Part shown: one piece after another, positions 205 through 2,894 of the stretch
Layout of the letters: the number at the start of each line of letters is the position of its first letter
Position numbering within the stretch: position 1 is the stretch's first letter
Assembly (NCBI GenBank): GCA_965603825.1
Contig: CBFDEM010000037.1
Span: forward strand, 186,001-250,000
Source: Blepharisma stoltei ATCC 30299
Lineage: Eukaryota; Protista; Ciliophora
Direction: 5' to 3'
DNA: 64,000 nt
Position numbers and translations under genes: made by a program
The notes under the pieces: generated by a model
What the model was told of the DNA's origin: nothing
The model's database searches: none
What the model saw: the letters and a program-made list of their open reading frames with translations, nothing else

Positions 205-1251
205 ATGGCCAGGCCTAAAGGAGTCCCAGAATCCGTAGAATACATATCCCTTCCTTTCTATCCTCTTTTATCAGGTGGAATCACAGCATTTCACAGGCCT
301 TCAATTCGAGGCATTTCTATCCTAGCCCAATCCACTCCATGCACAACAGTATTTACCCTCCAATCTGAGCACGAATGCCCACATGAAATTGAAAAAGCTT
401 GCTTAGACCACGGTCTTAAATGAGTATGAATTTGCTTACAAGGCGCAAATAAAAAATTATTAGAAGGCAATAAAGCGTCGACTGCAATTAGATCTGGGCT
501 ACTTGATGCTAGAAAAAGACTAGACAAAGGTGAATTTTTATACATTCATTGTGCGGCTGGAATACATAGGACAGGGTTATTTATTTATGCTTTGATCAGG
601 ATTTGTGGGTATTCGAAGCAAGAGACTTTGAATATTGTGAAATCAATTAGGGTAGCTACATATGAAAAATGCGGAAGCATGAGATTTGATTTAGGTGAAG
701 GGATTGCTATAAATATATTAAATGGGACTGTTGGCAAACAAATTGAAGGGCTGGAAAGCTTGAAAAGTGAAGAATTCATAGAAAGTCCTTTTATGTGGAT
801 AAAACTGATACCAACTCATCAGGAAATGATCAGATTTGAATGCATTCTGACTGACAAAGAGCTTAATAGATATGTTTTAGGAAGTGTGGTGAGCTTGAAA
901 ATAAATTTTAAATATTTGTTAAAAGAATTAGGGGAGAAATGAATGCAGGCTAGAGATGTTTTGTATTCACCAGAACAAAATTCAAAGAGCTTCAAGCCTT
1001 ATTTAAGAGAATTGACAGATTTTTGTATTGAAACTTTTGGTAAATCGAAAGCTCAATTGATTGGAAAAGATGTGTATATAGAAAAACAGTTTATTGACAA
1101 ATTTTGGCAGCCTTTGAATGATCATCTATGGGAAGAACCAATAAATTTGACATCTATTGAAATAGCATTGGGTTTAGAATCAAATGTTAACACAAGTCTT
1201 GTTGAAGATATTTTATATTTTCGACATATAAAAGATACTTATTTTATTTAA
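205..1251 (+). CDS. Cysteine (PTP/DSP-fold) phosphatase fused to a degenerate oligoribonuclease (Orn/REX2)-like domain, 348 aa
   Basis: Single frame when TGA=Trp (421, 427, 940). HCAAGIHRTG P-loop at 547-576. C-terminal half aligns by eye with Orn (FMWIKL, ILTDKELN, QLIGKDVYIEKQFIDKFWQPL, INLTSI, VEDI). Confidence 0.75.
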
Positions 1252-1382: not shown

Positions 1383-1832
1383 ATGGATCTCTATAAAAAA
1401 CTCGAACAATACATATTTGAAGGAGAAATGTATCAAGCAGCCATGTACGACCTTCAAAACAAAGCATCCCTCAGCATGATCGAAAAACAAAAATTAAAAA
1501 AAGCATACAGCCAAGGCTGGTGGCTTGGAAATTTAATTCAATGTTCAATCTTAATAGGCTCAATGATGCTTATGGATAAAAAATTAGCAAAATTTACCAG
1601 AGAAAAAAAAGCAGCATTTTATATTGTAGGAATTGGGATGTATTATTTCGCCTTCATACTGACAAAATCATTCGGATGGCATCATAGCTTTTCACAAGTT
1701 GAACCAATAGTTAGACAATATGTCGAAGAGGCAACTCCAGAGGAGATAGCAAAACTCCAAGGAGAAATACCAAAATCAATTAAAACTTTGATTTCAAAGA
1801 AAAATGATAGCAAAGAGAGTCAAAAAGAATAA
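1383..1832 (+). CDS. Hypothetical protein with two predicted TM helices, 149 aa
   Basis: ATG-TAA ORF flanked by AT-rich spacers; two hydrophobic segments. Confidence 0.7.
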   Translation: MDLYKKLEQYIFEGEMYQAAMYDLQNKASLSMIEKQKLKKAYSQGWWLGNLIQCSILIGSMMLMDKKLAKFTREKKAAFYIVGIGMYYFAFILTKSFGWHHSFSQVEPIVRQYVEEATPEEIAKLQGEIPKSIKTLISKKNDSKESQKE

Positions 1833-1957: not shown

Positions 1958-2894
1958 TTAAGAATCATTATCTCTTTGAAGTTCAACCACTTTTTGTGTT
2001 ATTCTTTGAGCTTCTTGAATAGGAGAGCTTAAATAGAAATCTAAAGACAGAAAAGAAGATATAAGCGCACACATGTAAAAAGCTCTAATTCCAGCTCCTT
2101 TAAATAGTGCGAAAACCCCTTCTTCACTTATAAGCTGATTAAAGTGAGCTCTTAGCGGTTTATGATCATGAAGAATGTCAGTCATAACTCGAGTTTTCAT
2201 AATATCAAAAGGTGTTGATAAAATAGCTGCTGTTATCGTCGCTATTGTGTTCATCCATTGAAAAGCTTTGAATTGTGCAAAAGCTTGGGCCTTTTGCTTT
2301 CTTTCATAACTGGCAGAGTCATTAAAATATTCTCGGTAGTTAGCTCTTTTTTGCTGTTTAGTAAAAGTTGGCGTTCTTTTCTCTCTTTCTTGGAGGTATG
2401 AGAGAATTCCGAAGCGAATTGTGTTAAATGCTACTTCTCGACCTAGATAGACTGAAAAGCCACTCCAAAGGCCAAGGGGTCCTTTATATCCTAAGATGTC
2501 TTTATATAAGTCTTTTATAGAGGAATACATGCCTGTTTGGAATTGCTGCCTTCAATGCTCAGTTGGGCAGCGAATAATGCAGGAAACGATATCTGCAAAT
2601 CCAGAGACCAAAAAAAAGGTAGTAAACTGTGATAAGCCAACTAAATAGAGAATTACAGCGATTTTGGACGATTGGATGGGCTACATCACAGACCTTGAGC
2701 CTAAATAAAAATGCTGGAAGTGATGTGACTATGCTGCCAACTCCGTAAAATGATGATAAAGGTTGTTTTAAAGCTAGGATATTGAGGTTATTTGTTTGGA
2801 TGCGTGTTAGTATTGAGCTCACAGGATATAATAAAGATTCTGCTAGTATGATACTTGCACATTTTACAATATCCTTAGAATTATCTTGCGACAT
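1958..2894 (-). CDS. Mitochondrial carrier (SLC25) family protein, SAM-carrier-like
   Basis: Carrier signatures PVSSILTRIQ, PTEHWRQQFQ (TGA=W) and PFDIMKTRVM; frame restored by 16-nt intron 2641-2656. Confidence 0.8.
2641..2656 (-). other. 16-nt spliceosomal intron GTAATTCTCTATTTAG
   Basis: Removal joins the two carrier ORFs in frame; A at -6. Confidence 0.85.

Follow-up and report, generated by a model that had tools for sequence, protein, structure and literature searches.

What is the role of a nuclease-like domain that has lost its catalytic residues when it is carried behind an intact phosphatase? This question is raised by a gene at positions 205-1251 of the window, the stretch of 64,000 nucleotides (nt) from the ciliate Blepharisma stoltei ATCC 30299 that was analysed as a whole (contig CBFDEM010000037.1, 186,001-250,000; assembly of 41.46 Mb in 64 contigs). 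A preliminary description of this DNA had joined three open reading frame (ORF) fragments, with TGA read as tryptophan, into one protein of 348 amino acids (aa), and had assigned to it a cysteine phosphatase followed by an apparently dead oligoribonuclease (Orn/REXO2) domain. The reading that we favour, to which we assign a probability of roughly 0.6, is that of an expressed two-domain cytosolic protein in which the phosphatase is followed by an Orn-derived dead nuclease whose remodelled ligand pocket would target or regulate it. The coordinates of the features discussed below are collected in Table 1.

The unity of the gene had to be settled beforehand. In the bacterial code the ORF list splits into 592-942 and 943-1251, and an ATG directly follows the TGA at 940-942, so that a stop at this codon would leave two products, a phosphatase with a truncated tail and a separate protein of 102 aa starting from ATG 943. 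However, in the B. stoltei macronuclear genome, which is made of 64 telomere-to-telomere contigs and has introns of 15/16 nt, UGA means tryptophan (PMC9942806), and the translation of 205-1251 under this rule is identical, letter for letter, to the database protein P0168, the public record being the 348-aa read-through itself. The three in-frame TGA codons (421-423, 427-429 and 940-942; codons 73, 75 and 246) all fall in tryptophan columns ('L-x-W-x-W' and 'G-x-x-W') that are conserved among the homologues in the alignment of 24 full-length relatives (A1), the column of codon 246 is the best conserved of the C-terminal domain, and in the relative L009, whose gene has no TGA at all, tryptophan is encoded at the same columns by TGG. 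In the same alignment the N terminus of the 348-aa product aligns with 23 homologues. Contigs from four public runs cover 208-1162, 286-1171, 213-1068 and 286-1147, each as one contig without interruption or seam, and the bases at the TGA codons are unchanged in them; these runs are RNA-derived, because their contigs omit a 16-nt intron of a neighbouring gene at 2641-2656 and leave intergenic DNA uncovered. The RNA is continuous across nt 940 in all four runs, and separate transcripts split at 942/943 were not seen in them. A split at this point would also break one well-predicted fold in two. The two-gene model, contradicted by the code, by tryptophan conservation, by the fold, by the RNA contigs and by the protein record, is hardly conceivable and was rejected; 205-1251 is a single, expressed gene, as first described. 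A tiny intron at the paired TGA codons was rejected as well, since 421-440 offers no frame-keeping 15/16-nt GT..AG unit and the RNA contigs are gapless there.

The C-terminal half of the product descends specifically from Orn/REXO2, and not merely from some DEDD-fold protein, and it has kept the DnaQ fold. The link to Orn came first through a paralog, the 350-aa protein P0001 encoded on contig 27 (L002), which aligns colinearly with each of the three pieces of the window's protein and whose C-terminal half alone matches human REXO2 (E 4.6e-10), and then through profiles. The whole-family profile built from A1 finds REXO2 in the PDB at E 3.1e-18, with only Orn entries above the phosphatases, and a second profile (A2), restricted to C-domains from the subfamily to which the window's protein belongs (subfamily A), has Orn for all of its top 24 matches, the best at E 4.3e-10. 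The NCBIfam Orn model NF003765 is matched by 18 of the 24 C-domains; for the window's own C-domain the match has an E value of 0.0063 and 16 bits against a cut-off of 106 bits. When the window's C-terminal pieces were scanned directly, no Pfam match was obtained and phmmer returned only chance matches in the PDB (E about 1). None of the 24 C-domains matches Pfam RNase_T (cut-off 24 bits), and for this reason the Orn-derived domain is missing from annotation.

Structure prediction leads to the same ancestor. The C-domain was modelled and searched alone, since the phosphatase domain filled the list of fold matches of the full-length model, and it reached a predicted local distance difference test score (pLDDT) of 94.5 and a predicted template modelling score (pTM) of 0.89. 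Its top 50 Foldseek matches are all Orn/REXO2, so that the DEDD fold was recovered, and a scan independent of Foldseek ranks REXO2 (6n6i_A, Z 12.8 over 145 aa) above Cap18 (10.5) and RNase T (10.1). The proposal that this half follows the Orn pattern colinearly is borne out by the segments FMWIKLI, ILTDKELN (844-867), LIGKDVYIEKQF, LWEEPINLTSI and NTSLVEDIL, and in sequence the two are colinear from the ExoI motif to the 'YRxxDVST' segment. The Orn features that persist are the W61 platform, the 'TD' strand, the 'G-x5-(D/E)-x2-F' frame of ExoII, the 'F/Y-M/W-P' helix and the terminal '(E/D)-D-I' helix.

The genome also holds a separate, canonical Orn of 222 aa with two TGA=Trp codons (L005:1360-2028 (+), that is, C23:685003-685671), in which the DEDDh set is intact (WIDLELTG / HMDRLF / HRAFEDI). 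An origin of the C-domain from this resident gene was considered and is not supported, the family profile favouring human REXO2 (69 bits) and E. coli Orn (51.8 bits) over the resident Orn (28.7 bits). The resident enzyme has a phenylalanine at the position of W61 and 'HPYK' for 'HYR' in its phosphate-cap segment.

In Orn/REXO2 the roles of D12, E14, L18, W61, S108, D112, Y129, R130, S135, H158 and D163 have been assigned from structures, and the substitutions D12A and R130A each abolish activity (PMC6613908). Equivalent residues were located by alignment with E. coli Orn (L008:5605-6150) and with the B. stoltei Orn, and the substitutions named in the preliminary description are those found: the ExoI acids D12 and E14 have become K200 and I202, the ExoII acid D112 has become E293, a conservative change, and the general base H158 is missing, its loop falling in a deletion of about 13 residues relative to Orn at the ExoIII site. 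In addition, the 'MTGL' loop that carries L18, the wedge between the bases, is shortened and the phosphate cap (S108, Y129, R130 and S135) reads D289, E310, E311 and T316, whereas W61, on which a base stacks, is kept as W246. Both ExoI residues are kept by no member of the family, and the general-base histidine by none of the 24. The C-domain is a pseudo-nuclease, which would be unable to run two-metal DEDDh hydrolysis, because no member keeps the ExoI pair or the histidine and because D12A and R130A suffice to abolish the activity of Orn. It might be argued that the ExoII and ExoIII positions are still occupied by acidic residues and that subfamily A has a conserved Thr-His in its ExoI loop, from which a nuclease or phosphodiesterase working with non-canonical residues could be built; however, 20 of the 24 members have Lys or Arg for the metal-bridging Asp, there is no conservation of the Glu, the loop of the general base has been deleted and D12A inactivates Orn (PMC6613908), and we hold such an activity to be very improbable.

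The N-terminal domain, on the contrary, is a KAP/CDKN3-like small Cys-phosphatase of the 'PTP-SAK / Tc-R-P' kind, with the protein tyrosine phosphatase/dual-specificity phosphatase (PTP/DSP) fold and a complete C-X5-R loop. The full-length AlphaFold model, built on the 24-sequence alignment (pLDDT 90.5, pTM 0.61), is placed by VIA-align next to KAP/CDKN3 (1fq1_A, Z 17.0 over 163 aa, root-mean-square deviation 2.5) and Tk-PTP (5z5a_B, Z 17.0), followed by ShufPTP, SsoPTP and PTPMT1 (Z 15-16.5), and the family profile matches phosphatases of the PDB with E values down to 3.8e-11. With the small Cys-phosphatases (KAP/CDKN3, Tk-PTP, SsoPTP, DUSP23; PTP-SAK PF22784, Tc-R-P PF22785, Y_phosphatase3, DSPc) the B. 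stoltei protein shares not only the fold, at Z 16-17 over 146-163 residues, but also the H-C-x2-G-x2-R-T-G loop and, past the P-loop helix, an 'IR' motif. The HCAAGIHRTG P-loop is intact, as had been noted, and no substitution is seen at its H115, C116, G119, H121, R122, T123 and G124, either across the 24 family members or in wider relatives. What sets the protein apart from those enzymes is a Gly in place of the general-acid Asp, followed by a six-residue insertion, a conserved 'HRP' and 'W-x-W' signature, its eukaryotic origin, the fused pseudo-nuclease and scores below the Pfam gathering cut-offs. In particular, the 170-aa piece gives 21.8 bits for DSPc, 20.1 for Y_phosphatase and 20.1 for Y_phosphatase3 against gathering scores of 33.5, 20.9 and 22.2, respectively; the paralog P0001 lies above the cut-offs of DSPc (34.1 bits) and Y_phosphatase3 (24.9 bits).

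The loss of the general acid bears on the possible substrate. In the hidden Markov model alignment the Asp of 'PLPD' in 25xa_A falls on the Gly of the family's 'plkG', which is Gly80; in the 22 full-length members this column holds Gly, Ala or Tyr and never an acid, and the pLDDT of the full-length model drops to 63 over the insertion that follows (aa 81-90). In the chemistry of PTPs, a missing canonical general acid suits good leaving groups, such as phosphoanhydrides and RNA 5' tri/diphosphates. A nucleotide-derived, RNA-end or phosphoanhydride phosphate would then be a likelier substrate than a protein phospho-residue. The canonical general-acid Asp is absent also from the RNA 5'-phosphatases with PTP fold (baculovirus BVP, Mce1, DUSP11/PIR1), which share with the B. 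stoltei protein the fold and a link with an RNA-related domain. The comparison with DUSP11-type enzymes made in the preliminary description goes no further than the fold: BVP (1yn9_C) has a Z of 14.5 and rank 41, KAP and Tk-PTP (Z 17), like archaeal PTPs, PTPMT1 and VSP, score higher, and the domain is no closer to the RNA 5'-phosphatases than to other small PTPs. A similar outcome was obtained for the PFA-DSP/Siw14 inositol-pyrophosphate phosphatases, of which Siw14 (6byf) is the best Foldseek match to the full model (E 5e-6), and Pfam Y_phosphatase2 matches 13 of 92 relatives. The PFA-DSP loop has, as here, a His just before the P-loop Arg (G-x-H-R-T-G). However, the basic P-loop residues that hold the inositol phosphate are Ala-Ala-Ile in the B. 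stoltei protein, the VIA-align Z of 14.5 is under those of KAP and Tk-PTP, and no specific family relation is shown.

The genome has exactly two copies of the fusion, one in the window (subfamily A) and one on contig 27 (subfamily B), besides the separate intact Orn. A word-index search with the paralog P0001 returned only itself, and an exhaustive search of representatives with the same query gave 737 proteins at E <= 1e-3, 16 of them at E <= 1e-30 and many full-length; a word search from P0004 yielded further relatives, among which is the protein of the window. These searches recovered at least 24 full-length relatives of the fusion, which fall in two paralogous subfamilies. When the fusion was sought beyond B. 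stoltei, it was found, as an orthologue, in the ciliate Stentor coeruleus (OMJ75160.1 / A0A1R2BEM4), whose record calls it a hypothetical or 'tyrosine specific protein phosphatases domain-containing' protein; further clusters come from metagenome, Logan and MMETSP records. On this distribution the architecture is old and under selection. Two shorter proteins that are close relatives of the fusion's phosphatase domain, P0010 of 191 aa (43% identity to P0001) and P0008 of 234 aa (35% identity), end before or inside the pseudo-Orn domain and are either stand-alone forms of the phosphatase or truncated gene models.

The phosphatase domain alone is widespread, occurring in Rhodelphis, in a euglenid and in a Bacteroidota metagenome-assembled genome. 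Among the relatives it is fused, in single cases, to HIT/DcpS_C, NADAR, Thg1, His_Phos_1 or HAD domains; in the first of these (P0027, 308 aa, from a Logan contig; 35% identity to P0004 over 45% of P0004) the HIT/DcpS_C nucleotide-hydrolase domain takes the place of the pseudo-Orn. In the ESM Atlas the structural neighbours of the phosphatase domain are bacterial CDKN3/PTP-SAK/Tc-R-P phosphatases, several of which are fused to ADP-ribosylglycohydrolase, a coupling to Cys-phosphatases that has been discussed (PMC9503650); the ESM Atlas search by features gave no usable match, and its structure part recovered the phosphatase only. By association, these fusion partners give a weak hint of nucleotide or RNA-end substrates.

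When the 143 columns of the C-domain alignment (24 members) were ranked by property conservation, the W61/W246 column came first (aromatic in 24/24) and the D112/E293 column fourth (acidic in 24/24), followed at rank 19 by D12/K200 (basic in 20/24) and at rank 29 by D163/D335 (acidic in 18/24). Since the two subfamilies are only 14-23% identical in this domain, the conservation of these pocket columns points to selection on the former active site with a changed chemistry. In the likely arrangement, which this pattern suggests, the old pocket is a remodelled, metal-free ligand site, in which the metal site may be occupied by Lys or Arg, paired with those acids that were retained (always present at the ExoII and mostly at the ExoIII position) beside the invariant aromatic platform. 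The non-catalytic module would bind a nucleotide-type ligand and/or dimerise as Orn does, and in so doing would target or regulate the tethered phosphatase. Some ligand binding in the remodelled pocket is plausible.

Four aspects of the domain could also be explained if it were nothing but a dimerisation or scaffold module, giving a dimeric phosphatase or docking a protein partner and binding neither a small molecule nor RNA: Orn, which is an obligate homodimer, has an active site that lies across the dimer, Y129 coming from the second protomer (PMC6613908); the invariant residues of the subfamily A C-domain are mostly hydrophobic or Gly/Pro, of the fold-keeping sort; the phosphate cap is lost in the window's copy; and other dead DEDD folds, such as Exuperantia (5l80, Z 8.3) and ESRP1 (7wrn, Z 9.0), are non-catalytic modules. 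A pure interface, however, does not predict that the best-conserved polar and aromatic columns lie at former active-site positions, nor does it account for the phosphate-cap Tyr-Arg that subfamily B keeps. A role limited to scaffolding is, on this balance, a possible but unlikely explanation.

The preliminary description had gone further in another direction, proposing that the pseudo-nuclease binds nanoRNA of 2-5 nt or pGpG as Orn does and either delivers the 5' phosphate of that RNA to the phosphatase or is itself switched by the RNA. The descent of the domain from Orn, the retained W61 equivalent and the canonical general acid absent as in the RNA 5'-phosphatases (BVP 1yn9, Z 14.5) are in line with this proposal, as is the fact that subfamily B keeps Y129 and R130 (the Tyr-Arg is present in 8 of its 10 members, including the paralog P0001). 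Its first part, the dead nuclease, stands. The holding of a 5' phosphate is not supported for the window's copy: its cap residues S108, Y129, R130 and S135 have given way to D, E, E and T, it lacks the L18 wedge loop, and the two Glu that replace Tyr-Arg would repel a 5' phosphate; moreover, no inter-domain geometry for such a transfer is predicted. We regard the proposal in this form as improbable. Because the phosphate cap is lost, the ligand of the window's copy would probably not be a 5'-phosphorylated dinucleotide held in the manner of Orn.

A more specific version of the favoured reading makes the pocket a metal-free receptor for a nucleotide-type signal that gates or targets the attached phosphatase, the candidate signals being dinucleotides from RNA breakdown, an ADP-ribose derivative or a similar small molecule; this version is rather unlikely. 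If it were true, a eukaryotic signalling enzyme would read nanoRNA or nucleotide pools through a pseudo-nuclease sensor, and the two subfamilies, with and without the phosphate cap, would be tuned to different ligands.

Several observations weigh against a phosphatase governed by a ligand-binding pseudo-nuclease. The very copy under study has lost the phosphate-cap residues together with the L18 loop, and a purely structural role, for example in a salt bridge that fills the empty metal site, could account for the Lys/Arg, Asp/Glu and Trp that were kept. The alignment at ExoIII was made by eye, D335 being placed from 'EDI' against the 'DDI' of Orn at the start of helix 332-346. In the full-length model there is no confident contact between the domains (pTM 0.61 against pLDDT 90.5), and the linker has a pLDDT below 50 at aa 175-178, with an average of 61 for the 171-180 block. 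On the phosphatase side, another general acid is possible, such as E87 in subfamily A, in which case an ordinary protein phosphatase would be possible too, and each fusion partner of the relatives is a single case. Finally, the last ~80 nt of the coding sequence (1172-1251) are without RNA contig cover, the contigs ending at 1068-1171; this gap is read as a coverage effect, because the neighbouring gene loses its cover at the 3' end likewise.

To our knowledge, Orn/REXO2 occurs only as a stand-alone, essential enzyme that degrades dinucleotides, and we know of no inactivated Orn domain and no fusion of Orn to a phosphatase. A search of the literature for a phosphatase-Orn fusion or an inactive Orn-like domain retrieved no description, and the statement that the architecture had not been described holds within the literature and databases searched. 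Dead DEDD-fold modules are nevertheless known from elsewhere: in Exuperantia (EXO-like), Maelstrom and the N-terminal domain of ESRP1 the catalytic acids are lost and the fold is reused for binding or dimerising, and all three are among the fold neighbours of the C-domain (Z 6.0-9.0). Unlike the C-domain, they stem from DEDD branches other than Orn, and none is joined to a phosphatase. The PXL of PML is described as a further catalytically dead DEDD-fold module (PMC13659232), and it too comes from a branch other than Orn and carries no phosphatase.

The fusion is a real, conserved, expressed and hitherto unannotated architecture. Its conservation extends over two paralogous lines and at least two heterotrich genera; Pfam and UniProt annotation misses it, giving the proteins no other name than 'tyrosine phosphatase domain-containing' or 'hypothetical'. 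The fusion offers a case of a pseudoenzyme in which Lys/Arg has replaced a metal-binding Asp while the base platform was kept, and a lead on the substrates of the KAP/PTP-SAK-like phosphatases, a poorly understood group; a possible coupling, in ciliates, of the sensing of nucleotides or RNA fragments to dephosphorylation is also suggested. Even if the pocket were purely structural, a new domain architecture would remain, together with a correction to the annotation of about two dozen protein clusters.

Table 1. Features of the phosphatase/pseudo-Orn gene, in positions of the window
Feature	Position	Strand	Remarks and basis
Whole coding sequence	205..1251	+	348 codons and TAA, no intron; product P0168
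Cys-phosphatase (PTP/DSP fold) domain, aa 6-177	220..735	+	Fold comparison, Pfam, family profile
Two TGA codons, W73 and W75 of the conserved 'L-x-W-x-W' strand	421..429	+	Transcript continuous; W73 nearly invariant (A1)
Gly80, at the canonical general-acid Asp position of small PTPs, then family-specific insertion	442..444	+	Alignment to 25xa_A
P-loop HCAAGIHRTG, aa 115-124 (C116 nucleophile, R122)	547..576	+	Invariant in family
Flexible inter-domain linker, aa ~173-190	721..774	+	Low pLDDT; length and sequence vary in A1
Orn/REXO2-derived pseudo-nuclease domain, aa ~191-348	775..1248	+	Profiles, NCBIfam, domain model
ExoI remnant FMWIKLI	790..810	+	D12 (metal-binding acid) to K200; E14 (acid) to I202; 'MTGL' loop shortened
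TGA codon, W246, equivalent of the Orn W61 base-stacking platform	940..942	+	Profile alignment: family 'geeW' on REXO2 'sDW'
ExoII remnant LIGKDVYIEKQF	1057..1092	+	D112 to E293; phosphate-cap S108 to D289
Former phosphate-cap segment LWEEPINLTSI	1126..1158	+	Y129, R130 to E310, E311; S135 to T316
ExoIII remnant NTSLVEDIL	1189..1215	+	General-base H158 loop deleted (T330 by spacing); D163 probably D335

Some minor observations concern the surroundings of the gene and the other DEDD proteins of the genome. Downstream, an ORF of 149 aa at 1383-1832 (+) lies under RNA-derived contigs (1384-1852); it has no Pfam match, and its hydrophobic stretches suggest a small membrane protein. The 16-nt intron at 2641-2656 (-) belongs to a mitochondrial-carrier gene (PF00153) on the minus strand at 1958-2894. 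On the same contig, about 14 kb upstream of the window, L003:1426-2172 (+) encodes a DEDDh exonuclease of 248 aa and of the RNase_T / Pol III epsilon-like type (PF00929, 93 bits), whose ExoI motif 'FDVETTG' is intact and which is unrelated to the fusion. Elsewhere in the genome, at L007:748-2655 (-) on contig 41 and L004:1396-2664 (-) on contig 62, a Tpt1/KptA RNA 2'-phosphotransferase is fused to an RNase_T-type DEDDh exonuclease; the protein of L007 has 636 aa (PF01885 1.3e-59, PF00929 4.4e-13) and reads 'VDTKF' instead of D-x-E at its ExoI motif, and these fusions are a second case in B. stoltei of an RNA-end enzyme joined to a DEDD domain.

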